Shown here: positions 8,397 through 45,250 of the stretch, one piece after another
Position numbering within the stretch: the first letter of the stretch is position 1
Layout: every line of letters starts with the position of its first letter
NCBI GenBank assembly: GCA_002269645.1
Contig: NIVC01004372.1
Span: 1 to 48,156, forward strand
Length of the DNA stretch: 48,156 nt
Source of the DNA: Macrostomum lignano
Lineage: Eukaryota
Reading direction: 5' to 3'
Translations under genes and position numbers: made by a program
The notes under the pieces: model-generated
Seen by the model: only the letters and a program-made list of their open reading frames with translations
Database searches by the model: none
Told to the model about the DNA's origin: nothing

Positions 8397-8428
8397 CTGA
8401 ATAAGAAGTACGTCGGGGTGCTTTGCTT

Positions 8429-10955: not shown

Positions 10956-11057
10956 CTGCCATGTTGAAAATGCAGGGGTTGATTTAAATGTACTTCAAGT
11001 GGTGGGTCCTCTGGCATCAGAAAGCGAGTTAATATCCACACAGGACAAGCGGCTCAC

Positions 11058-17142: not shown

Positions 17143-17612
17143 GCCCGGTGATTCAAGTCATTATTGACAAAGGAATCGTATAGATCACAAAGCATTTGTT
17201 CAGAATAATAATTTTCTTTGCGAAAGAAGCAGAGATCGAGAGCCAGGCCAGGGCCCTCGATGCAGGAGTTGCAAGCCACGAGTTAATGAGCGATGCCTCT
17301 TCTCACCCTCAGAATTAGAAGATGACACGTGCAAAAATAATCTCTCCGCGAAAGTCAAGAGCATCGCGACTAGTACACTAGACTCAGGAGAGTATGCTCC
17401 TGTTCAAAGAAAGATGCGGATGCTGGATGATGAAGCTCTTTAGAGCGGCCCAGGGGTCAGTCTTGCCCGAGCAAACACGGGTCTATAATGGTGAGAATAA
17501 AAAGCAAAATAATTATAATTTTGCCTCTAATAATTATGTAGACTGATTGGCCTGACCTGCCCGAGCAGCCGCAGCATCCAGCAGCGATGGCAGAACTCAA
17601 AGACAGTCAACG

Positions 17613-17904
<292 letters not shown>

Positions 17905-18304
17905 GCACAGTTCCCTAACTTCAAACAGTCTAAAAGTATCGATAGGAAGATGGAAATGGCGGCTTTCTGGTGCAAGGAAGCCGACACAGCTCTACTTATC
18001 TTTTTTGTGACAAACTTTCCTATTTGTTAGTTCTAATTTAATTTGCCCTGTTAAAGCTAGAACAGAGAGAGAGAGAGAGAGAGAGGGAGAGGGGTACAAA
18101 GTAAGCTGCAGGATCTTAAAGGGAATACTCTATAGCACTGTGACATGTCTCACCTTAGCACTTTCCTCGGCAGACCCACTTTTGATTATTCGAGTTTCAG
18201 GAAAGATTCGAACCCTGTGCTATGGCTTCAAACAAAGTCGGAGTTGTTTGAGATTGAGTTGACTACTCAATCGAACAAAATTTTGAAGAGTCCTTTTGAA
18301 GAAT

Positions 18305-23906: not shown

Positions 23907-24436
23907 TCACAGACGGCTGCCTCCGTCGCCGACGCCGAAGCCACCGCGGCTGCTGCAGCAGAACTCAAGTAGCGCTGTGAGCATCGCCAGCAGCAAGCCG
24001 GCGATGAGAATCCCGAACACGCCGAGCAGGTTGCCAATGGCCAGCGGCTGCAGCTTTGGGCTGCCGTCCTCTGGGCACTCGCCCTTCTCTATCCACCACT
24101 CCTTGTACTTGCGGTCGAGGTCCTGGCTCTCGCGCAACTGCAAAACGGCTTCGTTGATTCTCTCTCGGAGTTCGTGCCGCTCCTGGCTGATGGCGATTCC
24201 GTAGCCTTTCAAGCTAAACTCCTGCCCGACCATCATGGTGACGCAGGGCTTCCTGTTGTTGGTGTAGATATTGGTCTTGGACTCCAGGATAAAGGCATAT
24301 TTGCCGTCGGATCGGATTACCCGGTCGATGCCTTCGGCTAGAGAGTTGGTGTACACGGATTTGTCGCGTTCCATCAGTTCGAACATCTTTTTGTAGGTGG
24401 GCTCCTCGGAGCGACGGAAGAACTCCTTAGTCGAGC
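23907..24436 (-). CDS. GRIA: AMPA-type ionotropic glutamate receptor, exon 5 (S2, M4, C-tail ending GGSRL*)
   Basis: Acceptor TTTTCTTCGCAG|GC gives GSTKEFFRRS; DGKYAFILES, RKPCVTMMVG, KGYGIA, WWIEKGEC and the M4 helix are GluA-like. Confidence 0.93.
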
Positions 24437-24699
24437 CTGCGAAGAAAAGTTTTTCGAGCTTCTTATTTAAGGCACATAAACACTGCTCACTGTTGTGGTC
24501 TCAGGGGCACAGCAAGCACCTCAGATTGAACTCATATTCAAATATTTGGTAGACTTTTACCTTTTTGATTTCTGCCTCAGCAAACTGTCTGCTAACAAGC
24601 TGTGGGCCTATGCTGCCGCCAGGATTCGTTTCAGTATCCGAAGGCACCCACCACCCTTCTGAATTCTATCAAGATCCACGAACCATGCAACAAACCCAC

Positions 24700-24858
24700 C
24701 GATGTCCATGGACCAAACCCACCGATGTCCATGGACAAACCTCCGGATGGCCATGGACCAAACCCACCGATGTCCATGGACAAACCTCCGGATGGCCATG
24801 GACCAAACCCACCGATGTCCATGGACAAACCTCCGGATGGCCATGGACCAAACCAACA
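24700..24858. repeat. 45-bp tandem repeat, ~3.5 copies, in iGluR intron 4
   Basis: CCATGGACCAAACCCACCGATGTCCATGGACAAACCTCCGGATGG repeated. Confidence 0.9.
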
Positions 24859-24949
24859 GATGCCAATGAACGGATGCTAAATCACTGACTACTCAAGTGG
24901 CTAAGTTACTACTTCAAGCGCAAAAAAGTTGCTCCTCCAATGCCCTCAC

Positions 24950-25290
24950 CTGAGTTAAGGGTGCCAAATTTGACACCCTTGGCGTCGTTAGCCAAATCGC
25001 TGACGCTTTCAATTGGCGCGATCAGCCTCTCGATTGTAAGACAGGCAGTCAGGTTAGCGGTGTAATAGGCCATGATGATGAGCGAGAAGGCCCACCAGCA
25101 GGAACCAATTATTCTTGTTGACGCCGACCTGGGCGAGATGTCGATGCCTTGCTGTACAAACGAGGCGAAACTAAACCAGAGACTATTCACTAAACTGAAG
25201 TTTCTTTCCGCTGTCTGCACAGGTTGGTGTCGCAGTAGCGGTCTCTGCGTCGGCTGCGACCTGCCGTAGCGGTCGACCTCCACGGAACAC
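24950..25290 (-). CDS. GRIA: AMPA-type iGluR exon 4 (M2 pore loop, M3, start of S2)
   Basis: [25 protein letters not shown]...[36 protein letters not shown]...KFGTLNSG; acceptor TTAGCAG|G (phase 2), donor TCAG|GTGAG (phase 1). Confidence 0.93.
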
Positions 25291-26014
25291 CTGCTAAATG
25301 CGTCGACGAACGAAATTGAATTAAAAATCCAACTTTTCGCCAAATCTGCTTTCCAGAATGTCACGGTCTCGTTTTAAATGTAACATACGCTCGTACGAGC
25401 GTAAACAAAAATTTCTGAAGAAAGGCGTCTTGCCAACTCCTCGTCTTGTCCTATCCACATGTATTAAACACTTGATGTGATTGGCCACTTCCTTGGTCAA
25501 TGACACTACTTTAGGCGTCTGTTCAGAATTTTACCCATAAATTTGCACAGTCAAGCGAAATCTGCCTTTTTGATTTGGTTCCGAGCTTTCGTTTATGGAA
25601 AAATCGACAGATCTGACGTTTCATTGCAAAATCCGTCAGTAACTAGCATTTAGGAAAGTCGCGACTTTCCTAGTGATTTCTTTAGTTCACCTTCACTTGT
25701 CTCTGTTTACTCTGTTTTCTCTCTCTGTCTAGCTCAATCTTGTTATTCTTATCTCTCTCCCTTGTTGCCTTCTGATTGGCTCTCCATTCTCGCCTCTCTC
25801 TTTAGTCGCGCACTCGACCCCTCCTTTTATTATAAGGGAGTCGACCCCCCTCTAAGTTAGTGTCATATATAACACTGGTTTGGGCCCTGCGCCCACTTAC
25901 TGCTCCTTCTCTTAGTATTCAATTAAATAGTCTCTAGTTTAGTTTTATTTTCTCGACATTCAGATCCATCGGGCCTTAAGAAAGCGTCCAACAGGAATAG
26001 AAACTGACACTCAC

Positions 26015-26330
26015 CCCGGACCAGAGGCGCGCTGCCGCTGTTGATCTGGTGGCGGCTGGTCCTGCAGATTCCACTCAAGCGGGCTGACACGGGCCAGCAG
26101 TGCCATGACTGCGGCCAGGATCATCGTTGCCATTAGGATGGCCACCCACAGCTGATGCTCCAATGGCTGCATAAAGCTGAACATGCCGGGCTTGGTCTTC
26201 TGTGGCTTTTTAATGATCACAGACAGGCCGAAGTTCATGAAGGGCTCAGAGAACAGCACGTATTCGCTGCGCTCAGAGGTGATTGTCAGGGAGGCGATCG
26301 CGACGTCCGCTTTGCCGCGAATCACCTCAC
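26015..26330 (-). CDS. GRIA: AMPA-type iGluR exon 3 (end of S1, M1)
   Basis: GEVIRGKADVAIASLTITSERSEYVLFSEPFMNFGLSVIIKKP...FSFMQPLEHQLW...RVSPLEW; phases 1 to 2 consistent with flanking exons. Confidence 0.93.
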
Positions 26331-26447
26331 CTGGTGATGGGAGTGTTGATTCAATTTGGATTAGACAAATTAATCAATTTATGCTGTTTATAAGTGGGTC
26401 GTAAATATGTATTTTTTAGTTTTTGAGTTATAGGTGCCTCAGGTATC

Positions 26448-26945
26448 TCCACCCCGACCTGAGGTATCTCCTCTCCGACCTAAGGTATCTTCACACCGAC
26501 CTGAGGTATCTCCACCCAGAACTGAGGTATCTCCACCCAGAACTGAGGTATCTCCTCCCGACCTAAGGTATCTCCTCTCCGACCTGAGGTATCTCTACTA
26601 CGACCTGAGGTATCTCCACTCTGACCTGAGGTATTTCCTCTTCAACCTAAGGTATCTACACTCCGACCTGAGGTATTTCAACCCGACCTGAGGTATCTCA
26701 ACCCCGACCTGAGGTATCTCCACCCAGAACTGAGGTATCTCCACCCAGAACTGAGGTATCTCCTCTCCGACCTAAGGTATCTCTTCCCGACCTAAGGTAT
26801 CTCCTCCCGACCTGAGGTATCTCCTCTCCAACCTAAGGTATCTCCACTCCGACCTGTGGTATCTCCACCCCAACCTGAGGTATTTCAACCCGACCTGAGG
26901 TATCTCAACCCCGACCTGAGGTATCTCATCCTCGACCTAAGGTAG
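26448..26945. repeat. 21-bp degenerate minisatellite (CCGACCTGAGGTATCTCCACC), in iGluR intron 2
   Basis: Core AGGTATCTC every ~21 bp. Confidence 0.9.
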
Positions 26946-28289
26946 CTCTACTCCGACGCGGTAGCAGATATCGAAATGTAGGTAGCAATTCACTTCAAAC
27001 CCCAAGCAGTACCCGAGCATCCAAAATCGTACGTGTGAGTCTTCGATACATTACTGACTGACATGCCATCTGTCACCTCGTTCTTTTGTGGATTGGATAC
27101 CTAGAAGGATTCTGGCTGCAGTAATACCCCTGATAGTAGTTCGTATATTGCAAAAACCGAATGATTCGAGGCTTTCTCGATGGTCTCTCTCCCTGTTTTT
27201 CTTCCCCAGAAATTCTTCTCTTCAACTCAACGCACTCCATCGCCATCTGACGCTGTCATATTGGCTGTCACATGTCGTTGTTGGAGGCGGCCTTTTAAAG
27301 GAGAAAAAAGAAAAAATTTCCAGTCAAACGTCGTCTGCACTTTTCTGTCCACTTATGAAATTGTGCGCTCTCAAGTAGCAATTCGAATATTGCTCGCGGG
27401 GGGGGGGAGGGCGCGGCATTTCCCCAGTCCGTGGACTCCCGGGAAATAGAGCCAGATAGACTGGAAGCAAAACTGGAAATTGCGAGCATTCGAAATATTT
27501 GAAAGGCGTCAAATACAGAGGGATTTTCAGTAGAGGGAAAAAAGATTGTGTAGAGCTCAGCTCTTGAGTGTAACATTGGATAGAAGGGGTACTTCCATGC
27601 CCGATTCTTCCAGTCCGGAATGCTCCGTTTCAGTGGTCCCCGGCCAGTCCCATATGACTTGCCAGGCTTCTTCTGTACGACGTACGTGCGTGGACTCCTC
27701 GTCACAAAATTTGCTTAAGCCAACTCATTCACCCCCAACCTGACCTTGCCTTCCCAGGCCCCATGAGAAATCAGGGAGGGTTTCCACTGCCTGGCGAATT
27801 TACTCCCCTATTCTGAACTGATCCAACAGTTTCCTCCACCCCCAGCATCTCCGTTTGATCATCCCCGCTTTTTGCACCGACCGATTGTAACTCCCAATCG
27901 TATTTCTTGGCTTTGATTGAAAGAAAAACTGTTGACATTTTTCTGATTGGCCTCATCAGCCCAGCTGTCTGAATCTGGGGCCGCTGATTTAACTGCAGTT
28001 ATTACTGTTCCCGATTGAATTTCAAACACCTGAAGCTTCAGATTGAGCAGAAAAGAAATAAAAATTTCATAATGCGTAGAATAGCTTTTTGACAAGTAAC
28101 TGGCCTCGTCAACTTTGCACCCTGACTTCCTGAATTCTCTACTCTCACCTCAGATATCCCTTTACTCCGAACCCAGCAGTCCTAGATATATACGAGAGTA
28201 GAGATCTCTCGTATGCTTACTCCGACCTTAAGTTTCAAAAATATTCCTCTCCTCCATCTTCAGTTATCCTCCGACATAGTGAATCCAGC

Positions 28290-28447
28290 TCATGGCTGCA
28301 GGCCAGATGAGAGAAAAGAGAGAGGAGAGAAGAGAGAAAGTTAAGAAGAGACGCAAACCTTGAGCGGGCCGGGTTGCTGTTGTAAAGTTTCAAAGGACCC
28401 GGGAGCCGGATAGAGAGGCTCCGCAGGCCGGAGTTTGCCGACTCCTG
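28290..28447 (+). mobile_element. hAT-like MITE fragment (right end with TIR GTTTGCCGACTCCTG)
   Basis: TGAGCGGGCCGG..TTTCAAAGGACCCG..GCCGGATAGA..CAGGCCGGAGTTTGC is shared with the element at 42184-42832; the end complements that copy's left TIR CAGGGGTCGGCAAAC. Confidence 0.7.
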
Positions 28448-28620
28448 TCCTACGACGTATCCCCGCTGTACAACTTCAGTCTTCAGGTGTCTTAAATCTC
28501 AGGTAAGTATTTAGCTATTCCTCAGACTTCAGGTACTCCCACTTTGAATGCAGTTCCAGAGTTCGTACTGTCATTGTGATGATTCCAGATCTCCCAATCA
28601 TAGCGATCTCACCGCCTCAC

Positions 28621-29428
28621 CCATCATTCCGTTCCACTCGAGCTCCCCGCTGCCATCGGGGCTGGGCTCCTGGGCGCCGTACTTTCCGTCCTCAACCAGG
28701 TGCAGCTGCCAGTCGACACCCAGCTTGGCGAAGACCATCTCGGCCAAGTCAATGCAGAATCCGTGATAGCGCTGCCTGAAATCCGAGGCGTTCTCGCTGC
28801 CCTCGCGCAACATGACAAACGGCTCGTTGAGGATGCTGACCACCCGGATCACGGTGCCATTGCCGAGCCTGAGGCTCGCATCTGTTGTGTCGTTTGCGCC
28901 GCTAGCGCCGGACCGCCTTCGGTGCCGGTCGTTGGTGATGTTGAGGCCGCCGGCAGGGGTCCAGACTCCAATTGGTTGGGAGCGGTGCGGCGCGCCCATC
29001 AGGTCCATCACGCGGATGGTATCGGAGCCGCTGCTTGAAAGCCTCGAGGCAACGGCTTGGTGCAGGCGGTGGCGAAGCTCTCGACGTTCAAGACTGTGAC
29101 GTCGCTGGCTGCCGTCGCCCCGGATTTTTCGCCGACCAACTACTAAACCGACGTCGCCTCCGGGGCAGGACAGGTCTGGCCAGGTCAGGACAGTTGTTCT
29201 GCTGACGACATGATCGTCGCTTGTTGCCAAGCCGACCGAATTAGCGGCCTCCGCCAGGGCGGTCAGAGCTGATTGCATCGCCAGAACATCGTGCGACGGC
29301 GGGTTGAGATCCGGCCGGCCGTGGCCGAGAACGGCGGCCGAACGGGATGGAACCGAAACAATAGCCGCTGGGGATCTGAGAGAGTTTGTAGCTGAACTGC
29401 CTGGATTTGCCCCTCGGATTACCGGCTG
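28621..29428 (-). CDS. GRIA: AMPA-type iGluR exon 2 (end of ATD, S1)
   Basis: Acceptor TTCTGTAG|CAG (phase 0); ...VIRVVSILNEPFVM...YHGFCIDLAEMVFAKLG...LVEDGKYGA...WNGMMG|GTGAG (phase 1). Confidence 0.88.
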
Positions 29429-29469
29429 CTACAGAACTGAGACAATGAGAAGACAAACCAAGAAAACTG

Positions 29470-29690
29470 AGGAACCACAAAACTGAGAAGCAAACTACGA
29501 GTAAAATGGAAGACCGAGTAAGGACACAACCGAGTAAAGAGACAACGTAGATGCATCTTTACAACGAGTAAAGATGCAACCGAGTAAGACACGACCAAGT
29601 AAAGACACAACAGAGTAAGAACACAACCGAGTACAGACACAAAACAACTGAGTAAAGACACGCAACTGAGTAAATTGACTCCCAAGACAC
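29470..29690. repeat. Degenerate GAGTAAAGACACAAC-type repeat in iGluR intron 1
   Basis: GAGTAA(A) motif recurring about every 15-20 bp. Confidence 0.7.
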
Positions 29691-29723
29691 TACTCCAACC
29701 GTAAGCAAGCTAAAAAGCCGTAC

Positions 29724-30587
29724 CGCCAGATCGAATCCGGTGATATTGCAGCCGCTGTAGATGAAGCTGCCCAGCTGCAGCTCCGACATGCCCAGCGCAG
29801 CAACGGCATAGTGATACTCGGGCCTATTCATGCCTAGCAGGGCCAGCTCTTCCAGCAGCAGCTGCACGCTGTGCATTCCACCAACATCTACAGCCAACAG
29901 TCGACGCCGCGGATGCTGCCGAGTAAGCCTGGCGTCCAGACCGCGCAGCGCCGACCGAGTTCTCTCCAGCTGCGATGGCCCGGCGGCCGGCGCCACCCGT
30001 CGAAAATCGATACTCTCCCCGGCGCTGCCAAATCCGGCGCTGTCGGCCTCGTCCTGTCGCTTCCGACGCCGGAGCGCCTCAGCGAGGCGAACACCCCGAC
30101 GGAAGCCGGCGTCGTCAGCGTAGACGTAGGAGAAATCCGTCCAGTTGAGGTAGGCCAGGAGGCTCTCAAACGCCGGCGCCAATTCGGGTAGCGGGCTGAG
30201 CCTGGTGCCCGGCAAGTCGGGAAAAGCCTGCCGCCAGGCGATGTAGAGCATGTCGTGCGCTCTGGCCCAGCTGGCGATGAGGCGGTCAGCCTCCGGACAT
30301 ACTGAGGCAAACAGGGCCGCGGCACCGGCTCTGGTGGCTGAGCAGAGCCTGGAGAGCAGGCTGTAGCCGCTTTGACTGATGTTAGGCTCCAACGGGACGA
30401 CTTTGACGACTCCGACGCTCGACGCGACGTCGGCAGCGACGCGCCTGAAGACAATCTCGGTGCCTGGCGGAGCCGAGCTGTCGTAGAAGAAGTAGATCGG
30501 AAATCTGGAACCTGCTGGCGCCGCCACTGCTGCTCCTGCTGCTGCGGTGGCGACAGAAACTATCAAGGCAAGGGTCAGCTGTTGCAT
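29724..30587 (-). CDS. GRIA: AMPA-type iGluR exon 1 (signal peptide and amino-terminal domain)
   Basis: Signal MQQLTLALIVSVATAAAGAAVAA; ATD motifs LAYLNWTDFSYVYADDAG and EYHYAVAALG...GCNITGF; donor GCG|GTACGG (phase 0). Confidence 0.82.
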
Positions 30588-31019
30588 CGGGTGAAAAACT
30601 TCTGTTGAAATCTGGGGAACTGGGAACCCCAATGGAGACTATGAGCTCACCAACTGAGGTTGGGACAAAATTTTGAGCATTTTCTTGGTTTAAAGCCAGT
30701 TTCCTGTCGCCTCCGGGCCTCTTTTTGCCTCCCTGATCCCCGAGAGTGTTGCCAGGGCGCTTGAGTCATCCAATAGAACGAGTAAAGGGAGAGATTTTGC
30801 GCCCATTTGGCACGCAATTTTTATCCCTTAAAGGAGAAGTCATTAAAAATTGGGTCTACAGTGTTTCTCAGAGTCTCAGTGCAGTTGCAAAAGCAAGCCG
30901 CCGCTTCCGGACACTCAACTCGGGTTGTAAACCTGACATTCACCGAGCTGATTCGGATTTTTATGTGCTCAAGCAAATGTTTTGAAATGCTGTCCAGCCT
31001 CTCTTAAATCATGTAGTTT

Positions 31020-32003
31020 ACTGTCATCCTCTCCCTGATTCTGTAACTTACTGTCACTGTCTCCCTGATTCTGTAACTTACTGTCACTGTCTCCCTGATT
31101 CCGTAACTTACTGCCACCCTCCCTGATTCTGTAACTTTCTGTCACCGTCTCCCTGATTCTGTAACTTACTGTCACTGTCTCCCTGATTCCGTAACTTACT
31201 GTCACTGTCTCCCTGATTCTGTAACTTACTGTCACTGTCTCCCTGATTCTGTAACTTACTGTCACTGTCTCCCTGATTCTGTAACTTACTGTCACTGTCT
31301 CCCTGATTCTGTAACTTACTGTCACTGTCTCCCTGATTCTGTAACTTACTGTCACTGTCTCCCTGATTCTGTAACTTACTGTCACTGTCTCCCTGATTCC
31401 GTAACTTACTGTCACTGTCTCCCTGATTCTGTAACTTACTGTCACTGTCTCCCTGATTCTGTAACTTACTGTCACTGTCTCCCTGATTCTGTAACTTACT
31501 GTCACTGTCTCCCTGATTCCGTAACTTACTGTCACTGTCTCCCTGATTCTGTAACTGACTGTCACTGTCTCCCTGATTCTGTAACTTACTGCACCTCCCT
31601 GATTCTGTAACTTACTGTCACTGTCTCCCTGATTCTGTAACTTACTGTCACCGTCTCTCCCTGATCCTGTGTTTTCATTCTTACTACTTAACTGTCTCCC
31701 TGATTCTGTAACTTACTGTCACTGTCTCCCTGATTCTGTAACTTACTGTCACTGTCTCCCTGATTCTGTAACTTACTGTCACTGTCTCCCTGATTCGTAA
31801 CTTACTGTCACTGTCTCCCTGATTCTTAACTGACTGTCCCGATTCTGTAACTCCAAAGATTCTGTAACTTACCCTCTTGCAACTTACTGTATCGCAAGTC
31901 TCCCTGATTCTGTAACTTACTGTCACTGTCTCCCTGATTCCGTAACTTACTGCCACCCTCCCTGATTCTGTAACTTACTGTCACTGTGATTCTGTAACTT
32001 ACT
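31020..32003. repeat. 30-bp minisatellite (CTCCCTGATTCTGTAACTTACTGTCACTGT), ~30 copies
   Basis: Direct tandem repetition, degenerating with indels at the right end. Confidence 0.95.
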
Positions 32004-32439
32004 GCCATTCTCCGCTTGTCCCCAATTGTGCATGAACAGACTAAATCCATGTTAGTCCACTGGCAGCCTTTTATCTGGCTCTCGACCAGTTCACCCTTTC
32101 TTCACTTTTTCTCTGTAGGCTATGAAATAGTGCATAATTTAGCCATTCCGCTTGGCCCCAATTTGCATGAAACAGACTAAATTGTTAGTCCACATGGCAG
32201 CCTTTTATCTGGCTCTCGACCAGTTCACCTTTCTTCACTTTTTCTCTGTAGGCTATGAAAATGGCAGTAGAAATCACAGCCTTATCTAGCCAGTTTCATG
32301 GCTGATCAGTCAGTAAAGGTAGCTGATAAGGTTGCCAAGCTGAACCCTATAAGGTACAGAGCCTGTGGTGCCACTCGCCTCTCATTCTAACTCAAAATTT
32401 ATTCAACAAAGTAGTCAACAGAGCCCACAGAGACAAGCC

Positions 32440-32530
32440 ATGGCGGACAACTTTCTCATTGAAGAGAAGATTGTGACGTTGCAGAAATCTGCGATGGAAA
32501 ATGTCACCGTCATGGCTGGCATCGACAGAG
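32440..32530 (+). CDS. PANK: Divergent type II pantothenate kinase-like protein, exon 1
   Basis: MADNFLIEEKIVTLQKSAMENVTVMAGIDRG; ends AGAG|GCAAG (GC donor), phase 1. Confidence 0.72.
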
Positions 32531-32655
32531 GCAAGCGGCTCAGGCTCGATTAATTCAATTATTAGCCACTATTTTACTTTTACGGTATACTGGCTGGGTT
32601 TAGGAATCCATTATATTATATGCATTAACCGTCCGACCCACCTTGTTGCATGCAG

Positions 32656-32872
32656 GCTGTTCCCTCACCAAGGTCCTCTTCGTCACTGCCGGAAACTCTG
32701 ACGACACTTTCAAACTACACCTTGCACTCTTCAACAACACGCACTTTGAGGCCGGACTAGACTATCTGGCTAGCAAGGCCATCCTGCAGCGGGGAGAGGG
32801 TGGCAAACTGCACGTGACTGGCGTCGGATGCGACAGATATCGAGAGCTAATTCAGGAGAAATTGGGACTGGA
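32656..32872 (+). CDS. PANK: PanK-like exon 2
   Basis: Acceptor GCATGCAG|GC; CSLTKVLFV...GKLHVTGVGCDRYRELIQEKLGLE|GTAAG, aligning with PanK DIGGTLVK and TGGGAYKF segments. Confidence 0.8.
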
Positions 32873-32909
32873 GTAAGAATTATTGGGGCTGCTAATCAGC
32901 GGTTGACAT

Positions 32910-33282
32910 TGAAACACCCACCCTACCTTCTCGGTTGGTTATGTCTCTCCTCCCACAGCCATTAAAACACCCACCCTACCTTCTCGGTTGGTTATGTCTC
33001 TCCTCCCACAGCCATTAAAACACCCACCCCACTCTCTCGGTTGGTTTTGCCTCTCCTCTCACAGCCATTAAAACACCCACCCACCCTCTCGGTTGGTTAT
33101 GTCTCTCCTCTCACAGCCATTAAAACACCCACCCCACCCTCTCGGTTGGTTATGTCTCTCCTTCCACAGCCATTAAAACACCCACCCCACTCTCTCGGTT
33201 GGTTATGTCTCTCCTCTCACAGCCATTAAAACACCCACCCCACCCTCTCGGTTGGTTATGTCTCTCCTCCCACAGCCATTAA
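32910..33282. repeat. ~53-bp tandem repeat, ~7 copies, in PanK-like intron 2
   Basis: GCCATTAAAACACCCACCC...TCGGTTGGTTATGTCTCTCCTC(C/T)CACA repeated. Confidence 0.92.
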
Positions 33283-33794
33283 ATCACGGTTGGTTGTACC
33301 TCGGGTCGTTGGCTAGCAGAACTTCATTGAAGGATTTGCTATTCTGGTTGCTATTACTGGCAGTCGAATTGCTGCCCGTCAAATGACGGTATCGAAAAAT
33401 TAGTTGCAAACAATAGGTAAAACTGGGATTCTCAACTAATAAATACAAGCGTAGCTTTAGTAGCCAATCAGGTAATGGGATATCAGTCTTATCAGTCGGT
33501 TCTTGCACGGTTCACCGTCTTTAATTATTAATCCAGGATAAAATTATCCTGGCTTCAACTGAATTCTTAATTTAAATCTTACAGGAACAATTAGATAGTA
33601 ATACTGCTTTCACACAATACTACTGACTAGCAGATGAGTAGCATAGAAGTAGTACGCGGACAATTATTACTTTCAAAAACAAAATAGCAGAACTGGCTTT
33701 CACAACGATAAAAAAATCTTGAAGACCAACTTTTGAAGCGAGAACAGGACGGTGAGATGAAACTGTTTGTGCTCCCCTGTCTGCCTGCTCTCAG

Positions 33795-34044
33795 GTTGGA
33801 ATTCATCGACGAGTTCCTGTCGCAGACTCGCGGCGCCCACTGGCTGATCAAGAACCTGCCCATTGAGGAGCTCTGCTATCCGGAGACGGAGGCCGACCTC
33901 GGCCAAATCACTGGCAGGGCTGAGAACCCGCTGCAGGCCAACATGAACCAGCAGTTTCAGCTGAGCAGCGAGGATGTTGCCAGCGCGACCCCCTCCCTGC
34001 CCTGCCTATTCTGTTTCATTGGTTCCGCCGGTGGCGTCATCTTT
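33795..34044 (+). CDS. PANK: PanK-like exon 3
   Basis: Acceptor CTCTCAG|G; LEFIDEFLSQTRGAHWL...EELCYP...PCLFCFIGSAGGVIF|GTGAG, matching PanK DEL..KG and NIGSGVS segments. Confidence 0.8.
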
Positions 34045-34608
34045 GTGAGCGGGCTGGCAGGGCTCGGGAACAGTTGCCATGCATTCTGATGAATCTGGTC
34101 TTGCCTTATCAACTTTCATTTTGGCATCCTTAATTTGGAGCCCCGGATGCTAAATTAGCACTTACTTTTTTCAAGCTGAATGCCACTTAGTTTAGGTTCC
34201 TTATTTTGGGACGCTACGGACATATGAGGCTAGATAAAGAGGGGCGCTAGTCAGTCAGGTGATGTACACAAACTCGTAAATCATTTGTGGTCCTAAATTT
34301 AAGATGAATAACTGCAACCACGAAGAGGGATTGTGTGTGGCTGTTAGTGCATATGCCTGTTTATCGTATAAAAGCCCACTACTCTTATCCGATGTCACTC
34401 ATCTGAATAGTTTAAGAAGGGAGCCAGTCGAGGGCAACAGAGGAGGCTCGTGCCTTTTTGGTATCAAGGATTTCTGTACCGCAAGTCGTCGAATTATCTG
34501 TGAGGTGACTGCCGTCAAAATTTTCTGCGCGCGTCTGCCTGTTCGCGCTTATGTCAAATATCGTTGTAATTTTGCGGTGAAATTCCCTTCCCACAACTGA
34601 AATCCCAG

Positions 34609-34864
34609 CTGAAAGAGAACGGCGAATCCTACCTGGTCACGAGTCTCTGGATGGCCGGCAAGTCGTTCCTCGGCTTCGGCAAGATGCTGCTGGGCACCAG
34701 CAGCTACGACGAGATAATGCGGCTGGCCGAGCGCGGTCGCCGTGGCAACATCGACAACGAGGGCAGAGACCTGGTGCAGACCGGGGTGGACGGGCCCTAC
34801 GGCCGGATGCCCGCCAGCCTGCCGATCTTCCCGTTTGGCAAAGCTGTGGACCTGGAGCTGGAGA
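34609..34864 (+). CDS. PANK: PanK-like exon 4
   Basis: LKENGESYLVTSLWMAGKSFLGFGKMLLGTSSYDEIMRLAERGRRGNID...PIFPFGK, matching PanK GGGTF.GL...F.E...A..G....VD...SSFG. Confidence 0.85.
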
Positions 34865-34867
34865 GTG

Positions 34868-35205
34868 AGCGAGCGCATGAGTCTTTGTTTTAGAGTCTCT
34901 TTGTTCGAGAGTCTTTGTTCGAGAGTCTGTTTGAGGTATTTGCTTAATAGTCCTTATTCGAGAGTCTGCTCGAGAGGCTTTGTTCTTGAGTCTTTGTTGT
35001 GGAGTCTATTTACGAGTCTTTGTTTTAGAGTATTTATTTGTGAGTCTTTGTTTGTGAGTCCATATACAAGAGTTTTTTGCTTGAGTGTCTTTGCTCGAGA
35101 GTCTTTGTTCAAGAGTCTTTTTCGGGAGTCTTTGTTCGCGAGTCCTTATTCGAGAGTTTTTGTTTGGGAGTCTTAATTCGCGAGTCTTTGTTCGCGAGTC
35201 TAGGT
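34868..35205. repeat. Degenerate ~14-bp repeat (GAGTCTTTGTTCGC) in PanK-like intron 4
   Basis: GAGTCT(T) core recurring about every 14 bp. Confidence 0.8.
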
Positions 35206-35495
35206 TTAGGATCTTGCTTTTCGGAACTAGTTATAGCAGGGACTTCTAAGAAATGCAATCAGATGACTGGAAGTAATCAAACACTGCCCCCAATTTACAC
35301 GCTAGTTGTTTAGATGGTCATGCCAAGATGGTCATGCCAATTCTTCTGATTCCTGAGCACCAACAGGTACGCGAATAGGTACGCAGGCCAACACTCACCC
35401 AGGGTATTCAGCTACTCTTCCAAATAGTTTTACAATTATGTAGTTAAACTTTTCTGGTGGCTTCATCAACTTTGCTTAAACGCCCCGAATCGCAG

Positions 35496-35680
35496 GAAAC
35501 AAGTGCAGCAAGGAGGATCTCGCCGCTTCCATGGTTGCAGCTTTCGTCACCAACCTGATCAACCTGCTGTCAACATCCGCCAAGATGACCGACACTCGCA
35601 GCATCTTCTTGGGCGGCAACTTCTTTCGGGATCCGTTCATGCGGCAGGAGATGCTTAGGCAGCAGCACTTCTTTCAGATG
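35496..35680 (+). CDS. PANK: PanK-like exon 5
   Basis: NKCSKEDLAASMVAAFVTNLINLL...SIFLGGNFFR, matching PanK SKEDLA....I.NNI...VFVGNFLR; phases 1 to 0. Confidence 0.88.
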
Positions 35681-35699
35681 GTGGGTTCTGTGTGCTGGC

Positions 35700-36045
35700 C
35701 AGGATTGAGATGGGTGTCTGGGAGTTGGGGTCTGCATGCTGGCCAGGAGAGGACTGGGTGGGTGTCGAGGAGGTGGGGCCAGGAGAGGACTGGGAAAGGT
35801 GTCGGGGAGGTGAGGCCAGAAAATGACTGGGGTGGGTGTCGGCGAGGTGGGGCCAGGAGAGGACTGGGAGGGTGACGGGAAAGTGAGGCCAGGAGAGGGC
35901 TGAGGTGATGTCGGGGAGGTGGGGCCAGAGGAGGGCTGAGGTGGATGTCGGGGAGGTGGGGCCAGAGAGGGCTGAGGTGGGTGTCGGGGAGGTGGGGCCA
36001 GGAGAGGGCTGAGGTGGGTGTCGGGAGATGGGGCCAGGAGAGGAC
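35700..36045. repeat. G-rich ~35-37-bp minisatellite in PanK-like intron 5
   Basis: GGGTGTCGGGGAGGTGGGGCCAGGAGAGGGCTGAGGT-like units. Confidence 0.88.
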
Positions 36046-36089
36046 TTGGTGGATGCCGCACACCCCACGGAGCCGTTGCTCACCCGCAG

Positions 36090-36200
36090 CAATCACTGAA
36101 TGTCCACTACCTCATCACGGGTCACACCGGAGCTGTAGGGGCGATGATCAGCGAACCTACGGACGCCCAGAGGTACCTGAAATTCGGCAAGCCAACCTGA
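36090..36200 (+). CDS. PANK: PanK-like exon 6 (terminal)
   Basis: Acceptor CACCCGCAG|; QSLNVHYLITGHTGAVGAMISEP...KPT*, matching PanK F..HEGY.GAVGAL. Confidence 0.85.
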   Translation, partial: QSLNVHYLITGHTGAVGAMISEPTDAQRYLKFGKPT

Positions 36201-36887
36201 GCCTTCATGAGGCCTGCAACAAGTCCGCTGCTGCAGACTTGGCTTGAAATTTTCGACGTAAAATATGGAATATTGTTTCCAGAAATTGCGACTTACTATC
36301 GTTGAATAAAAATTGAATAAAAAATTAAAATACAATTGCAGTAGCCACTGCAAGTAATTACCAATTACAAAGTAATAATTGCAGTTCTTAGTGAATAATT
36401 TCGAATAGAGTTGAAATTGGCTAGAATTTGATTCTGCCGAGCTGCAGGTGCGGCAATTTTCAATTTAGTCTTTACTATTTAATTGCCAGAGTGGGCTGGG
36501 CGCTTTTCAAGCTTTTCACGCCTCTCCAGCTGCTGCTGTCGCCTACGGTTCTTCAAACACGGCTAATCGATCGAGTGCTGCATCAGCGAAAAAACTTTCA
36601 CTGTTTTCCACTGCAGAGATAGACTGCGATAGTTTTATTAATTTAATGAAATAATGAAAAGCATAAGGACAGACGGCCTTGCCGATTGCGATATTATGAA
36701 TAATACTACTAATATTACAATATTATTATGAATATCTGGATAGCGCGCAGAAATGGGGCGAAAGGGGGAGAGGGAAAAGGTAAGGAGATGGAGAGAGAAA
36801 AAGTAGAGGAGAGATAAGAGAGAGAAGGGATGATACACAATCAGTAAAGACGGGAACTTTGACACTGAAGAAAATTGCTACGTCAGT

Positions 36888-38918
36888 TTGAGGCAGGTAT
36901 CTGACTCTAACCAAGGACTTCTAGATAATAAACTGGACGGGAAGGCTGTGTTGAAAAAGGCAGCTGGCTGTACCAGAGGTGGCCTAAGAAACAAACGCGT
37001 TTTCCTCTCATTTTGTCCTCGGACCCCTCCTATTGAGAAATGTTTTTCAATCCTACCAAGGCTAGCTGCGAAGAAGAAATACAGCAGAAACTATTCACCC
37101 GAGCTAATAATATTTGCATATCTAATTCACGCATCCAGTTCCGCTGCCTACAAAGTTTTACTTCAAGAGAATGTTTTGTGCCTACCATCAATTAAGACAC
37201 TTCAGGTCACATGACAGGTTCAAAGCAACACTGGGTTAGACAACACTGCGTAGTCTTCGTGTCTCAAAGCTAAATGCCTTCGAAAGGAAATGTCTACTTA
37301 TCATTGATGATATTGCAAAACGCGTCGAATATAGCAATGGTGAAGTGCATGGGCTGACAGCCGCAGGGTCAGTGGCATCAACTCTACTCTGTTTCATGGT
37401 TAAATCATTAGTCAATAGATTCAAAGACCTGGTTGCTATTTTCCCAGTAGCTACTCTGACAGTTGAGAAGCAGTATCTTTGTTACAATGACGTCACGACA
37501 ACTGTTCGAAAAGTTGGTTTGGAATGCATAGGAATTTCCGTAGATAATGCGTCCGTTAACAGAATTTTTTGTGAACAGCCTTTGCGGTGGAACTCTGACG
37601 ACAAAAATTTACGACTCCATTACGGAACAGCCAATATTTCTAATTTTTGATCCCGTGCACGACTTAAAAAATGTATACAACAATTTTCAAACGCGCAAAG
37701 CTTCATTGCCCAAGTTTTGAACCAGATTTACCGAATGGTTGCCGAGCCAGTTTTCATCACATCACGCAACTATATCAGTTAGAAGCGTCCGCTCCACTCA
37801 AAAAAGCTCATAAGTTATCGCCTTCTGTTCTTAATCCAAAGAATATCGAACGTGCATGAAACTGCGCTTTTCATTTCTATGATAGAGGAGTTGTGGAAAA
37901 TTTTTAACGTGAAATCATCTACAAAAGGGAAGCATTGATTCCAACTTCCCAGCGTGATTGCGCCATGGATCCTATTACATCAACGCAAGATTGGAAGCTG
38001 AAACATCTGAGAAAATTCGCGGATTTCCTTCAACGCTGGGAAGCCAATGGTCGCTTGGGACTGTCAAAAGAAACATTTCTAGCTTTACGCCAAGCGTGTT
38101 TGTCTCTTTCCGATTGTGCTTCATATCTGCTCGATCACGCCGGATTCAACTTCGTACTTCTTGGTCATCTCCAATCCGACGCCCTGGAGTCTAGATTCGG
38201 GTGGTTGCGTCAACTCTCTGGTGCAAACTATTATGTATCGATGCGGCAGATTTTAGAAAGCGATAAAAAAATTCGGGCCGTCTCCCTCTTTAAGTACTCA
38301 AACATCAGCCTGACAGATATAGAAAGCGCTGTCCGAGCTGAATTCGACCGCCGATGCCATTGCAGCTGCACTGAAGCTTGATCATGAGCCATCAGTTTAT
38401 GAAAAAAAACATCATCTTTTTTCGTAAGTTGTTATGCCGCTCGATCAACTATTTGATCTACGAGGTGCAAATCTTGCTCTGAATTTCTCACTGACTTTGA
38501 AAACGTTCAATCGGCGACTGACGATTCCAGCTTGTGTTCATCAACGTTCCAGGACAGCATTGACAGGGGCGGCCTGGTGAAGCCATCGGAGTTTGTTTTT
38601 AATCTGGCAGCTCATTGTTGGAAAGTCTTTCAGGAGATTTGGGCCGACTGTAATCTTAAGAAGCAGTTTTTGCGATCGTCTTGCCAGCGCTCCCTGTTCA
38701 GCAAGATCATTGATCGCTGCACTTTCAACGAGGAGCACATGCACCTGGTGTTTGGCATCAGCATGTGCACATCCGGCCACGATCTGCGGAGCCACATCGT
38801 TCGTCGGCTTTTCCACTTCTTTGCGAAGAAATTCGTCAAGGAGATGACCAACACAGTGCAGTCGAATTCTGGGCGACAGAAGCGCAAAATTGCTAAGCTG
38901 TCAGGTTCAAAAATGTGA
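36888..38918 (+). mobile_element. Decayed P-element/THAP9-family transposase (pseudogene)
   Basis: Ordered motifs across frameshifted ORFs: YSPELIIFAYLI...AYKVL...LPSIKTLQ; KCLLIIDD; GISVDNASVNR; FDPVHDLKNVYNNF; KKAHKLSPSVLNPKNIER; ETALFI...WKIFNVK; HLQSDALESRFGWLRQLSGANY; RGGLVKPSEFV. Confidence 0.88.
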
Positions 38919-39329: not shown

Positions 39330-39458
39330 CCTACGCTCGTATTTATCCTCTAGTTATCTGTGGCGTATCTATTTAATTTTTATATTATTTTCCACTTTTT
39401 TAGTACCATATTCGTACCGAAAGGAATGGGGCAAAATCTGTGCCTCAGTGCCTTTATG

Positions 39459-39985
39459 TCTGAGTCGGATGCTTCAGTGCTTGAGTTGGATGCATCAGTG
39501 CCTGAGTCGGATACACTAGTGTCTGATTCGGATGCATCAGTGTCTGATTCGGATGCATCAGTGCCTGAGTCGGATACACTAGTGTCTGATTCGGATGCAT
39601 CAGTGCCTGAGTCGGATACACTAGTGTCTGATTCGGATGCATCAGTGCCTGAGTCGGATACACTAGTGTCTGATTCGGATGCATCAGTGTCTGATTCGGA
39701 TGCATCAGTGCCTGAGTCGGATACACTAGTGTCTGATTCGGATGCATCAGTGCCTGAGTCGGATACACTAGTGTCTGATTCGGATGCATCAGTGCCTGAG
39801 TCGGATACACTAGTGTCTGATTCGGATGCATCAGTGCCTGAGTCGGATACACTAGTGTCTGATTCGGATGCATCAGTGCCTGAGTCGGATACACTAGTGT
39901 CTGATTCGGATGCATCAGTGCCTGAGTCGGATTCACTAGTGTCTGATTCGGATGCATCAGTGCCTGAGTCGGATGCTTGAGTTGG
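39459..39985 (+). repeat. 42-bp (2x21) minisatellite, left arm (GATGCATCAGTGCCTGAGTCGGATACACTAGTGTCTGATTCG)
   Basis: Direct tandem repetition; inverted copy at 40253-40365. Confidence 0.95.
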
Positions 39986-40252
39986 ACCGAAGGTCTCCTA
40001 AAGCCATGAAATTCAGTACTCCTACCGGTAAGAAATCCCAAAATAACGCTACCTAAATTTTTTTCTATGTACGAAATCAAGGAATGTAATATTAGCTATA
40101 TTGAGCTATATAGGGGGCCCCGGCCGCAGCAATCAGTGGATTGAGCTACAAATGCTCATTAAAATTACCAAAAGAACGACAATTTTCTTTTCTTACGCCG
40201 CAGAAATTATTTTACATAGCCACGTGAGGATTATGCCGAAATACTGAGCCAC

Positions 40253-42183: not shown

Positions 42184-42832
42184 CAGGGGTCGGCAAACTT
42201 TTTCACCTCAGAGACCAGATAGAGAATCTACGAGCTAGATCATTGCTGCGGGCCGGAGAGGAAGAGGGAATAGGAGAGAAGAGGAGAGAGGATATAAGAG
42301 ATAAGAAGAGATGAGAGCGAAAATAAAAAGAGATAAAAGAGGAGAGGAGAGGAAAGAGATGAGAGGCCAGAGGAAAGGATAGGATGGAGAGGAGAGGAGA
42401 GAAAAGAGAGGAGAGAGATAAGAGAAGAGAAGAGAGGGATGAGATGAGAGAGGAGAGAGAGGAGAGGAGAGAGGACAGGAGAGAGGAGAGGAGAGAGGAG
42501 AGGTGGGAGGCGAGATGAAAAATGCGATGAGAGAAGAGATGAGAGAGGAGAGGAGAGAGGAGAGGAGAGAGGAAAGAAGAGATGAGAGGAGAGATGAAGG
42601 GTGGGAGGAGAGGTGAAAAATGCGATGAGAGAGAAGATAAGAGAGGAGAGGAGATAAGAGAGGAGATGAGATAAGAGAGGAGAGAGGAGAGGAGAGATGA
42701 AGGGAGAGGAAAAGTGAGAAGAGAAGACACAAACCCTGAGCGGGCCGGATTGCTATTGTGAAATTTCAAAGGACCCGAGGGCCGGATAGATAATCTTTGC
42801 GGGCCGCATGTGACCCTCAGGCCGGAGTTTGC
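42184..42832 (+). mobile_element. hAT (Charlie/MER58-like TIR) non-autonomous MITE with expanded AG-rich interior
   Basis: Starts CAGGGGTCGGCAAAC; ends CAGGCCGGAGTTTGC (truncated TIR); TTAAGA flanks both sides; homologous to 28290-28447. Confidence 0.72.
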
Positions 42833-42944
42833 TTAAGAGTTTGTGAAGAATTTAATCACATCGGTGCTTTCTGGTGGTCAAGTTTGGCTAAGGTTATACA
42901 AGGTTTCTAGTGAGATGTGCCCAGCTTTGTGCCCAACAAGAGAC

Positions 42945-43503
42945 AGGGGTGCCCACCAAGGAGATTGGGGCGCCAACCAAGGAGATTGGGGCGCCAACCA
43001 AGGAGATTGGGGCGCCAACCAAGGAGATTAGGGCGCCAATCTAGGAGATTGGGGCGCCAACCAAGGAGATTGGGGCGCCAACCAAGGAGATTGGGGCGCC
43101 AACCAAGGAGACTGGGGCGCCAACCAAGGAGATTGGGGCGCCAACCAAGGAGATTGGGGCGCCAACCAAGGAGATTGGGGCGCCAACCAAGGAGACTGGG
43201 GCGCCAACCAAGGAGATTGGGGCGCCAACCAAGGAGATTGGGGCGCCAACCAAGGAGATTGGGGCGCCAACCAAGGAGACTGGGGCGCCAACCAAGGAGA
43301 TTGGGGCGCCAACCAAGGAGATTGGGGCGCCAACCAAGGAGATTGGGGCGCCAACCAAGGAGATTGGGGCGCCAACCAAGGAGATTGGGGCGCCAACCAA
43401 GGAGATTGGGGCGCCAACCAAGGAGATTGGGGCGCCAACCAAGGAGATTGGGGCGCCAACCAAGGAGATTGGGGCGCCAACCAAGGAGATTAGGGCGCCA
43501 ATC
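42945..43503. repeat. 21-bp minisatellite (CCAACCAAGGAGATTGGGGCG), ~27 copies
   Basis: Direct tandem repetition; 7-aa periodic ORFs. Confidence 0.97.
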
Positions 43504-44209
43504 AAGATGAGTCACTGCTACCCTAAACGAACCACTTGATTGACTGACATCAATGTGGTCGGTCTAGTATGCCCGAGAAGTAAAGCAACGTTAGAACTCG
43601 CCCAGTCTTGCATGCAATACTCGTAAGTGTTTTTCATCTATTTTTCTTTCGGTTCGGCAGAATTTTGGGCACTTAGAGACTGCAGCAGCTGTTCAAGTCT
43701 GGAATCGGCTATTCATTTTTCTTTAACATAAAACTGAAAAAGCTTTTTTGTTTTTCTGCCTTTCGACAGCTGCAGCGAGTTTGCTCGTCAGAAAAACAAT
43801 TTTCTGAGCGACGTATTGAAAGAATTCCGACAAATTGGGGAAATTGCTTGCCAAGTAGGCACCAGTTTACTGCGCGCCTTTGAGCTGGCTTCTGTCCCAC
43901 CGTGTCTAGCAGAAAAGCATTTTTCTCTGGAGATAAACCGCTCCACCTCAGCAAATCGTTGCGGCACCCAAGCTCAAGCGGCTATTTTTGTCCTGCTCGA
44001 AAAACTTATTCTTCCCCGAGGCTGCTTCGTCACATTTGGATTGGTTAATCGGTTGCTTTCCTCCGCTTCTCCTAGAAAATTCTAATATTTTTCGTCCCAA
44101 CTGATTGCCAGACAATTAAATCTTAATGCATGCGGATGTCCAAGGACTACTTGCAGTGTAATTTGAAGAGTTTTTTTCAATTATTCAAGGCCCAGTGTCT
44201 GCGTGTCCG

Positions 44210-45250
44210 TCTTAGTGTCTGCCTGTTTTACTGTCTTAGTGTCTGTCTGTCTTACTGTCTTAGTGTCTGTCTGTCTTACTGTCTTAGTGTCTGCCTGTCT
44301 TACTGTCTTAGTGTCTGTCTGTCTTACTGTCTTGGTGTCTGCCTGTCTTACTGTCTTAGTGTCTGTCTGTCTTACTGTCTTAGTGTCTGTCTGTCTTACT
44401 GTCTTAGTGTCTGTCTGTCTTACTGTCTTGGTGTCTGTCTGTCTTACTGTCTTAGTGTCTGTCTGTCTTACTGTCTTGGTGTCTGCCTGTCTTACTGTCT
44501 TAGTGTCTGTCTGTCTTACTGTCTTAGTGTCTGTCTGTCTTACTGTCTTAGTGTCTGTCTGTCTTACTGTCTTAGTGTCTGTCTGTCTTACTGTCTTAGT
44601 GTCTGCCTGTCTTACTGTCTTAGTGTCTGTCTGTCTTACTGTCTTAGTGTCTGCCTGTCTTACTGTCTTAGTGTCTGTCTGTCTTACTGTCTTAGTGTCT
44701 GTCTGTCTTACTGTCTTAGTGTCTGTCTGTCTTACTGTCTTGGTGTCTGCCTGTCTTACTGTCTTAGTGTCTGTCTGTCTTACTGTCTTAGTGTCTGTCT
44801 GTCTTACTGTCTTAGTGTCTGTCTGTCTTACTGTCTTAGTGTCTGTCTGTCTTACTGTCTTAGTGTCTGTCTGTCTTACTGTCTTAGTGTCTGTCTGTCT
44901 TACTGTCTTAGTGTCTGTCTATCTTACTGTCTTAGTTTCTGTCTGTCTTACTGTCTTAGTGTCTGCCTGTCTTACTGTCTTAGTGTCTGTCTGTCTTACT
45001 GTCTTAGTGTCTGTCTGTCTTACTGTCTTAGTGTCTGTCTGTCTTACTGTCTTAGTGTCTGTCTGTCTTACTGTCTTAGTGTCTGTCTGTCTTACTGTCT
45101 TAGTGTCTGCCTGTCTTACTGTCTTAGTGTCTGTCTGTCTTACTGTCTTAGTGTCTGTCTGTCTGTCTGTCTGTCTGTCTTACTGTCTTAGTTTCTGTCT
45201 GTCTTACTGTCTGACTGTTTGTCTGTCTGTCTGTCTGTCTTATTAGTGTC
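44210..45250. repeat. 24-bp minisatellite (GTCTGTCTGTCTTACTGTCTTAGT), ~42 copies, ending in (GTCT)n
   Basis: Direct tandem repetition; 8-aa periodic ORFs. Confidence 0.97.

Follow-up and report, generated by a model that had tools for sequence, protein, structure and literature searches.

Mlig027093 of Macrostomum lignano belongs to a conserved subfamily of pantothenate kinase-like proteins with a putatively rebuilt acceptor pocket

The window analyzed here is the whole of contig NIVC01004372.1 from Macrostomum lignano (assembly GCA_002269645.1), 48,156 bp long. Within it, the gene Mlig027093 (32440–36200, forward strand) encodes a protein of 369 amino acids (aa) related to the type II pantothenate kinases (PanKs). 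A preliminary description made from the letters of the window had read this gene as an intact but heavily remodeled paralog, either a regulatory pseudokinase or a kinase for a new substrate. We found that the gene is intact and that its remodeling is common to a whole subfamily. The pattern of conservation favors the second of the two proposals, the new-substrate kinase, leaving the pseudokinase less favored. Our preferred reading, held with about even confidence, is that the product has catalytic activity, as an ATP-dependent kinase of small molecules, and that its acceptor is not pantothenate, or is held differently.

Membership in the Pfam Fumble family (PF03630), a search that the preliminary description had called for, was clear. 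Residues 44–353 matched at 108.3 bits (E = 6e-31; gathering score 28.5), a score that excludes a chance match, and the M. lignano paralogs named below scored 45–129 bits. Under the NCBIfam equivalog model TIGR00555 (panK_eukar), the Mlig027093 protein falls short of a type II pantothenate kinase: it scored 97 bits, below the cut-off of 247.6 (human PANK3, used as a control, scored 378.6), and every non-canonical relative that we tried scored 52–136 bits. From a family alignment of 23 sequences, AlphaFold2 gave a model with a mean predicted local distance difference test score (pLDDT) of 89.9 and a predicted template modeling score (pTM) of 0.89, in which low-confidence stretches were limited to the inter-domain linker (aa 141–170) and the surroundings of aa 241–250. 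The best 50 Foldseek matches in the PDB were all type II PanKs (human PANK1, PANK2, and PANK3, yeast Cab1, and S. aureus PanK), with E = 1e-18 to 2e-14, template modeling (TM) scores of 0.53–0.76, and identities of 17%–20%. Profile–profile alignment with hhalign against canonical PanKs gave a probability of 100% (E = 2e-49). The protein is thus a Fumble member with a modeled type II PanK (ASKHA) fold, predicted to be of the cytosolic type.

We mapped residues onto human PANK3, a reference checked, numbering included, against PDB 3SMS and aligned to the family with MAFFT and hhalign, which agreed. The motifs quoted in the preliminary description all stand where they were expected (DRGCSLTK at 29–36, TGVGC at 85–89, IDEF at 107–110, FIGSAGGV at 177–184, SYLVTSLWMAGKS at 193–205, FPFG at 260–263, and ITGHTGAVGA at 342–351), and its ungapped mapping of PANK3 Arg207 to a leucine was upheld by both alignments. 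Residues kept (PANK3 = Mlig027093) are D17=D29, G19=G31, and K24=K36 in the phosphate-1 motif, where T21 becomes S33; T114-G115=T85-G86 and G117=G88; the catalytic pair D137-E138=D108-E109; G191-S192=G179-S180 in the phosphate-2 motif, and G215=G203; Y258=Y250, F272-G273=F262-G263, and D288=D279; and G321-N322=G312-N313, R325=R316, G355=G344, G358=G347, and G361=G350. The replacements are G20 by C32, G116 by V87, G193 by A181, S195 by G183, and R207 by L195; G214 by A202, G216 by K204, and T217 by S205, which turn the GGGT loop into AGKS; Y254 by Val; V268-A269 by P258-I259; and H353-E354-G-Y356 by a gap followed by T-G-H.

By this mapping, the residues that anchor each of the three ASKHA nucleotide motifs appear to survive. 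The earlier statement that the ATP-binding glycines had been replaced is correct for G20, G116, G193, G214, and G216; it does not extend to D17, G19, K24, T114-G115, G117, G191-S192, G215, and G321-N322, which are kept and mostly invariant in the family. The proposal of a preserved paralog that retains the fold of type II PanKs and the catalytic Glu was borne out by the Fumble score, the AlphaFold2 model, the Foldseek matches, and the alignment. In PANK3, Arg207 and Ser195 hydrogen-bond pantothenate, with Arg207 holding its carboxylate, and Tyr254 forms a hydrogen bond with Glu138 of the other protomer in activation; these roles, together with those of Glu138, Val268′, Ala269′, and the Asp137–Tyr258′ and Glu138–Tyr254′ pairs, are taken from published work (PMC8366970).

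The remodeling had been read as a feature of this one gene, which it is not. Searched exhaustively with phmmer, 1.84 billion cluster representatives yielded 530 relatives, 18 of them at E < 1e-30; these 18 were mostly ∼360–380 aa long and aligned over nearly the whole protein, and three were truncated fragments. A profile word search of a 5.8-billion-protein set, uninformative on taxonomic range, gave six matches among the 8000 word-sharing candidates scored. M. lignano carries at least six paralogous loci of the subfamily, namely, Mlig027093 and five further loci (Mlig034563, at 47%–48% identity, Mlig031449, Mlig022685, Mlig027024, and Mlig007788). Other close relatives were transcripts in assemblies of Logan and of JGI metatranscriptomes; their 5′ and 3′ ends are those of polyadenylated, AT-rich mRNA and show no diagnostic leader. 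Two adjoining non-canonical groups hold proteins of the annelid Owenia fusiformis (at least four paralogs) and the nemertean Tubulanus polymorphus (two entries named “uncharacterized protein”). These spiralian Fumble proteins are stand-alone and ∼340–430 aa long, and are known from database entries alone.

Canonical type II PanKs (PANK1–3, Drosophila fumble, yeast Cab1, and S. aureus PanK) share with Mlig027093 the Fumble family and the two-domain ASKHA fold, the catalytic Glu, the phosphate-1 Asp, Gly, and Lys, the phosphate-2 Gly-Ser, the adenosine Gly-Asn, Tyr258, the Phe-Gly of SSFG, and Asp288. They differ from it in overall sequence (∼18%–20% identity) and in Arg321, which is found only on the Mlig027093 side. 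All canonical PanKs carried R-[VI]-x-G-x-x-x-G-G-[GA]-T, and most carried H-[ED]-G-[YF]; a scan for these motifs and an all-against-all BLAST set the Mlig027093-type proteins apart. A neighbor-joining tree of 126 domains separated canonical from non-canonical sequences with a bootstrap of 78/100; the monophyly of Mlig027093's own group was weak (36/100), owing to a few long branches. A profile of the own group scored PANK4-type kinase domains at ∼190 bits versus 121 bits for PANK3, a hint that the family may be closer to the kinase domain of PANK4, fungal, and plant type than to PANK1–3.

Residue states were counted in 42 non-canonical sequences (28 of the own group, 10 Owenia-type, and four Tubulanus-type) and 13 canonical ones. 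PANK3 position 207 is hydrophobic (M, F, V, L, or I) in 42/42 non-canonical sequences and Arg in 13/13 canonical sequences, and position 116 is V, A, or I throughout the non-canonical groups. At position 331 (Arg321), Arg is present in 28/28 of the own group and 8/10 Owenia-type sequences, and Lys or Arg in 4/4 Tubulanus-type ones; eight of the 13 canonical PanKs have Met or Leu there. Lys or Arg occupies position 216 (Lys204) in 23/28 of the own group and 8/10 Owenia-type sequences and is lacking in the Tubulanus type. The catalytic Glu is present in 27/28 of the own group. The family alignment (25%–48% identity to the Mlig027093 protein) is invariant at E109, G116, P172, G179, S180, G203, G263, D279, G312, R321, and G350 (Mlig027093 numbering), and D29, G31, and K36 occur in all 25 members aligned there, three rows being without the N terminus; the interface elements Tyr250 (the Tyr258 position) and F262-G263 are likewise conserved. 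Owenia CAH1779408.1 and its paralogs, Tubulanus XP_074646750.1 and XP_074660866.1, and the M. lignano paralogs therefore resemble Mlig027093 in the hydrophobic residue at 207, the G116 replacement, the basic residue at 331, and the retained Glu, although Owenia-type and Tubulanus-type sequences are only ∼25%–30% identical to it. As these derived states recur in every non-canonical group, the remodeling is an old and conserved redesign common to a subfamily, not a peculiarity of Mlig027093.

Selection in the subfamily was estimated as the ratio of nonsynonymous to synonymous substitution rates (dN/dS), a check that the preliminary description had proposed. For the nearest paralog, Mlig034563 (contig NIVC01002260.1), comparison with orthologs in two other transcriptomes gave Nei–Gojobori dN/dS of 0.08–0.12. 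Between Mlig027093 and the Mlig034563 clade, dN was 0.49–0.52 and dS was saturated (1.3–1.85), so the check yields for Mlig027093 itself only an upper bound on omega (at most ∼0.26–0.39). Tajima relative-rate tests detected no acceleration of Mlig027093 (P ≥ 0.10 in 21 tests), and its protein keeps 59 of 62 leave-one-out family-consensus positions (95%), one of the highest counts of any member. The three assembly copies of the gene are 99.4%–99.9% identical, and dN/dS between them has no power. Protein searches retrieved no ortholog of this exact paralog from another species.

The six exons of Mlig027093 join in frame (91 + 217 + 250 + 256 + 185 + 111 = 1110 nt), and the only stop in the spliced open reading frame (ORF) is the terminal one. 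This reproduces the preliminary description exactly; unmentioned there was the GC-AG junction of intron 1, the donor context of which (GAG|gcaagc) is a good one for GC; introns 2–5 are GT-AG. Mlig034563 is likewise split into six exons, in identical phases (91 + 214 + 247 + 256 + 185 + 147). The features of the gene are as follows.

32386–32439, forward: 5′ untranslated leader; paralog N termini align with the Met at 32440, and GenBank counts this stretch as coding sequence.
32440–32530, forward: exon 1, 91 nt, aa 1–30; start of the phosphate-1 motif (D29 R30), then the GC donor; Mlig034563 also has a 91-nt first exon.
32531–32655, forward: intron 1, 125 nt, GC-AG; donor gcaagc, acceptor ...tgcag; junction present in the transcript-derived GenBank model.
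32656–32872, forward: exon 2, 217 nt; codes G31–K36 of DRGCSLTK and TGVGC (85–89).
32873–33794, forward: intron 2, 922 nt, GT-AG; holds a 53-bp tandem repeat, 7.2 copies, at 32907–33287.
33795–34044, forward: exon 3, 250 nt; IDEF with the putative catalytic Glu109, the low-confidence linker (aa 141–170), and FIGSAGGV (phosphate-2 G179-S180).
34045–34608, forward: intron 3, 564 nt, GT-AG.
34609–34864, forward: exon 4, 256 nt; Leu195 (PANK3 Arg207 position), A202-G203-K204-S205 (GGGT position), Tyr250, and PIFPFG; the Mlig034563 exon is also 256 nt.
34865–35495, forward: intron 4, 631 nt, GT-AG; holds a 14/28-bp tandem repeat at 34879–35201.
35496–35680, forward: exon 5, 185 nt; SKEDLA (D279), LGGNFFR as the adenosine motif (G312, N313, R316), and Arg321, invariant and specific to the family; the Mlig034563 exon is also 185 nt.
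35681–36089, forward: intron 5, 409 nt, GT-AG; holds a 36-bp G-rich tandem repeat, 8.4 copies, at 35741–36046.
36090–36200, forward: coding part of exon 6, 111 nt; ITGHTGAVGA; TGA stop at 36198–36200.
36305–36310 and 36316–36321, forward: two AATAAA hexamers, probable poly(A) signals, ∼105–120 nt past the stop, as read from the letters.

The counterpart of intron 1 in Mlig034563 is GT-AG. Tandem repeats inflate three of the five introns (53 bp × 7.2, 14/28 bp × 23, and 36 bp × 8.4), and the introns of Mlig034563 measure merely ∼80–100 nt; a further repeat (133 bp × 1.9) lies just upstream of the gene, at 32011–32260.

The 369-aa protein is 100% identical to UniRef A0A1I8H9N6 (Macrostomum lignano). 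GenBank places a gene, BOX15_Mlig027093g4 (“hypothetical protein, partial”), at 32386–36200 of the contig, the product of which (P0166, 387 aa) consists of 18 in-frame upstream residues and the entire 369-aa protein. The M. lignano annotation was built from genome-guided RNA sequencing (RNA-seq) assemblies with StringTie, TACO, and TBONE (PMC5730564). A spliced transcript is supported because this RNA-seq-derived model has exactly the junctions listed above, the GC-AG intron included. Copies of the gene region on NIVC01002522.1 and NIVC01000851.1 are 99.4%–99.9% identical over 7 kb, introns included, and the ORF is intact in all three assembly copies. The extra copies fit the known redundancy of the M. 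lignano assembly, being redundant or very recent. In a fourth copy, Mlig027093g3 (PAA80537.1, P0167), a G run (∼34770–34790 in the window) is 1 nt shorter, changing QTGV to QTGW and truncating the ORF; the difference is probably an indel of the assembly or a homopolymer error of long reads, not the mark of a real pseudogene. Automatic database names in the family clash (“Glucokinase,” “Ppx-GppA domain-containing protein,” and “Pantothenate kinase”); we rejected the first two, which are inconsistent between paralogs and unsupported by any Pfam or NCBIfam match. Neither PANK nor any of the six Mlig identifiers appeared in the supplements of the three M. lignano papers searched, and these offered no expression data for the six loci.

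A kinase with a changed acceptor, the reading that we prefer, would be built as follows. The ATP-binding and proton-abstracting parts would be retained in the phosphate-1 residues Asp29, Gly31, Ser33, and Lys36, in Thr85-Gly86, in Glu109, in the phosphate-2 pair Gly179-Ser180, and in Gly312-Asn313. The acceptor pocket would be rebuilt, with the carboxylate-holding Arg giving way to the hydrophobic Leu195, the Ser195 and Val268/Ala269 positions replaced, and two new conserved basic residues brought in, Lys204 (where the GGGT loop used to be) and Arg321 (invariant). As a guess, the acceptor could be a pantothenate-related compound without a free carboxylate, such as pantetheine, or an unrelated hydroxyl metabolite. 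We prefer an active, re-specified kinase because the catalytic and ATP-binding residues are near-invariant at ∼30% identity, while the changes at the acceptor end are coordinated, directional, and mostly hydrophobic, with two basic positions fixed.

Several observations weigh against this preference. The phosphate-loop swaps G20 to Cys32 and G116 to Val87 could weaken or abolish ATP binding, and Ser195 and Tyr254, the latter the contact to the partner's Glu138 in PANK3, are also lost. Nucleotide-binding pseudoenzymes can likewise retain “catalytic” residues; that Lys204 and Arg321 face the active site is an assumption from sequence; and selection on the exact gene was measured indirectly. Position 20 of the phosphate-1 loop varies among ASKHA kinases generally, so Cys32 need not abolish ATP binding.

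It is rather unlikely, in our view, that the protein is a regulatory pseudokinase, one that has lost phosphotransfer and acts through a ligand (a nucleotide, coenzyme A [CoA], or its thioesters) or by dimerizing with a catalytic PanK or a paralog, like apicomplexan PanK2 or the mycobacterial CoaX pseudokinase. Such a protein could well lack Arg207, Ser195, Tyr254, and several motif glycines and fall far under the TIGR00555 cut-off, as this one does. PanK active sites span the dimer interface, and apicomplexan PanK2, with its deviant nucleotide motifs, functions only in a heteromer, pairing with PanK1 in Plasmodium and Toxoplasma (PMC8366970). The six paralogs in the M. lignano genome would permit heteromers here, and the conserved Tyr250 and F262-G263 are elements of the dimer interface. 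The likeness extends to the standing of both proteins as non-canonical type II PanK paralogs with a kept Tyr258 and other PanK-family proteins alongside. However, PanK2 lacks Asp137 and keeps both Tyr254 and Tyr258 (PMC8366970), whereas Mlig027093 keeps Asp108-Glu109 and has Val in place of Tyr254; PanK2 is also large, with insertions, and the Mlig027093 protein is compact.

The preliminary description knew of no animal example and had overlooked PANK4, which is established as a pseudo-pantothenate kinase of animals and carries E138V and R207W (PMC8861153, PMC11695632). Among the entries that we inspected (P0180–P0201), amniote PANK4 reads DKEDVM and FEWIGG, and fish, shark, and frog PANK4 reads DKEDEM and FERIGG. 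The E138V/R207W state was seen only in amniotes (seal, orangutan, platypus, a bird, and snakes), with position 138 unreadable in the orangutan fragment and some bird entries. Like Mlig027093, amniote PANK4 is an animal PanK-family protein without Arg207 in which pantothenate phosphorylation is not expected. It keeps DIGGSLTK, IGSGVSI, GGGT, and HEGYLGAIGA but loses the Glu; in Mlig027093, conversely, the Glu stays and the glycine motifs are altered. Every PANK4 type inspected, including that of fish, shark, and frog, had the glycine motifs. PANK4 also carries a C-terminal DUF89 (PF01937) 4′-phosphopantetheine phosphatase; in Mlig027093, Pfam found Fumble only, no DUF89 and no coding domain 3′ of the stop at 36200, which is followed by the poly(A) signals. 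The established pseudo-PanKs thus show a pattern opposite to the one seen here, with Glu138 gone from amniote PANK4 and Asp137, kept here as Asp108, gone from apicomplexan PanK2. The new conserved basic residues, too, suggest a pocket that was re-specified, not relaxed.

An unlikely alternative to the changed acceptor is that the protein still phosphorylates pantothenate (or pantothenate and pantetheine), the carboxylate-binding Arg having moved to Arg321 and/or Lys204; the paralogs would then be a set of diverged, working PanK isoforms, which may lack feedback by acetyl-CoA like the S. aureus type II PanK. The unchanged fold and catalytic Glu agree with this, and the loss of Arg207 coincides, across the three non-canonical groups, with the gain of a conserved Arg or Lys at two nearby motif positions, as expected of a migrated functional residue. 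A weak further point is that no canonical M. lignano PanK turned up, and no dedicated search for one was made; two PANK1–3-like sequences considered for that role, P0124 and P0063, were ruled out as environmental assemblies (P0124 from a metagenome, 66% GC; P0063 on contigs of 1.6–1.7 kb). The TIGR00555 score, 97 bits where the cut-off is 247.6 and PANK3 reaches 379, speaks against a pantothenate kinase, as does the joint change of the pantothenate contacts S195, R207, and V268/A269, mostly to hydrophobic residues. Multiple paralogs per spiralian genome suggest functional diversification, and the RefSeq label of the Tubulanus members stays “uncharacterized protein.”

That Mlig027093 is a functionless decaying duplicate or an annotation or assembly artifact, as the frameshifted Mlig027093g3, the repeat-swollen introns, and the failure to retrieve a cross-species ortholog might suggest, is barely credible, and we rejected it given three copies with an intact ORF, GT-AG and GC-AG junctions in an RNA-seq-derived transcript model, 95% retention of family-consensus residues at an unaccelerated rate, an exon structure in common with a paralog of 47%–48% identity, and a high-confidence AlphaFold2 model.

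Returning to a kinase with a changed acceptor, we tentatively extend it to a clade, with less confidence than we place in an active kinase as such. The Arg207-less, Glu-retaining Fumble proteins (Mlig027093, its five M. lignano paralogs, and the Owenia and Tubulanus proteins) may be an unrecognized, anciently diverged clade of animal small-molecule kinases, expanded in spiralians, with a new specificity gained through the relocated Arg321 and Lys204. Full-text literature searches found no description of a stand-alone, Arg207-less, Glu-retaining PanK-like family; Mlig027093 itself is already public as a hypothetical protein. As a separate observation, P0077, a PANK1–3-like protein with a typical animal N-terminal region, has Val at the Arg207 position and keeps the Asp-Glu pair, which suggests that Arg207 may have been lost more than once in the PanK family.

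Elsewhere in the window, ionotropic glutamate receptor exons (ANF_receptor, Lig_chan-Glu_bd, and Lig_chan) lie directly upstream of Mlig027093 on the opposite strand (23907–30632, reverse). A single 958-aa ORF at 11029–13905 (reverse) is protocadherin-like, with several cadherin domains (Pfam Cadherin, 191 bits, and Cadherin_2). Downstream of the gene, two adjoining ORFs of 148 and 128 aa (37935–38918, forward) had no Pfam match; they may resemble the C-terminal part of P-element/THAP9-type transposases. Tandem repeat makes up a large fraction of the contig. Short-period satellite arrays, open in several frames, occupy 54–1038, 2764–3623, 4554–5113, 8418–10967 (∼2.5 kb, with an 18-bp unit), 15080–15919, and 17587–18030, and further arrays of this kind lie at 30969–31565, 39360–40080, 42203–43515, and 44130–45246.

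The type II PanK scaffold is known for one reaction, the phosphorylation of pantothenate or pantetheine, and its non-catalytic relatives are the phosphatase-fused PANK4 domain and apicomplexan PanK2. M. lignano is amenable to transgenesis (PMC5730564), so the question of what these proteins do is experimentally tractable. If Mlig027093 were an ordinary PanK after all, Arg207 would be dispensable or relocatable, which bears on the reading of PANK variants and on inhibitor design. If the clade reading is true, the PanK scaffold would carry out a new enzymatic reaction in these proteins, perhaps as a kinase devoted to the salvage of pantetheine or as one that acts apart from CoA metabolism. With such a conserved, multi-copy subfamily in animals, the known repertoire of the scaffold would grow, either by a new kinase specificity or by a new class of metabolite-sensing pseudoenzymes linked to CoA metabolism.

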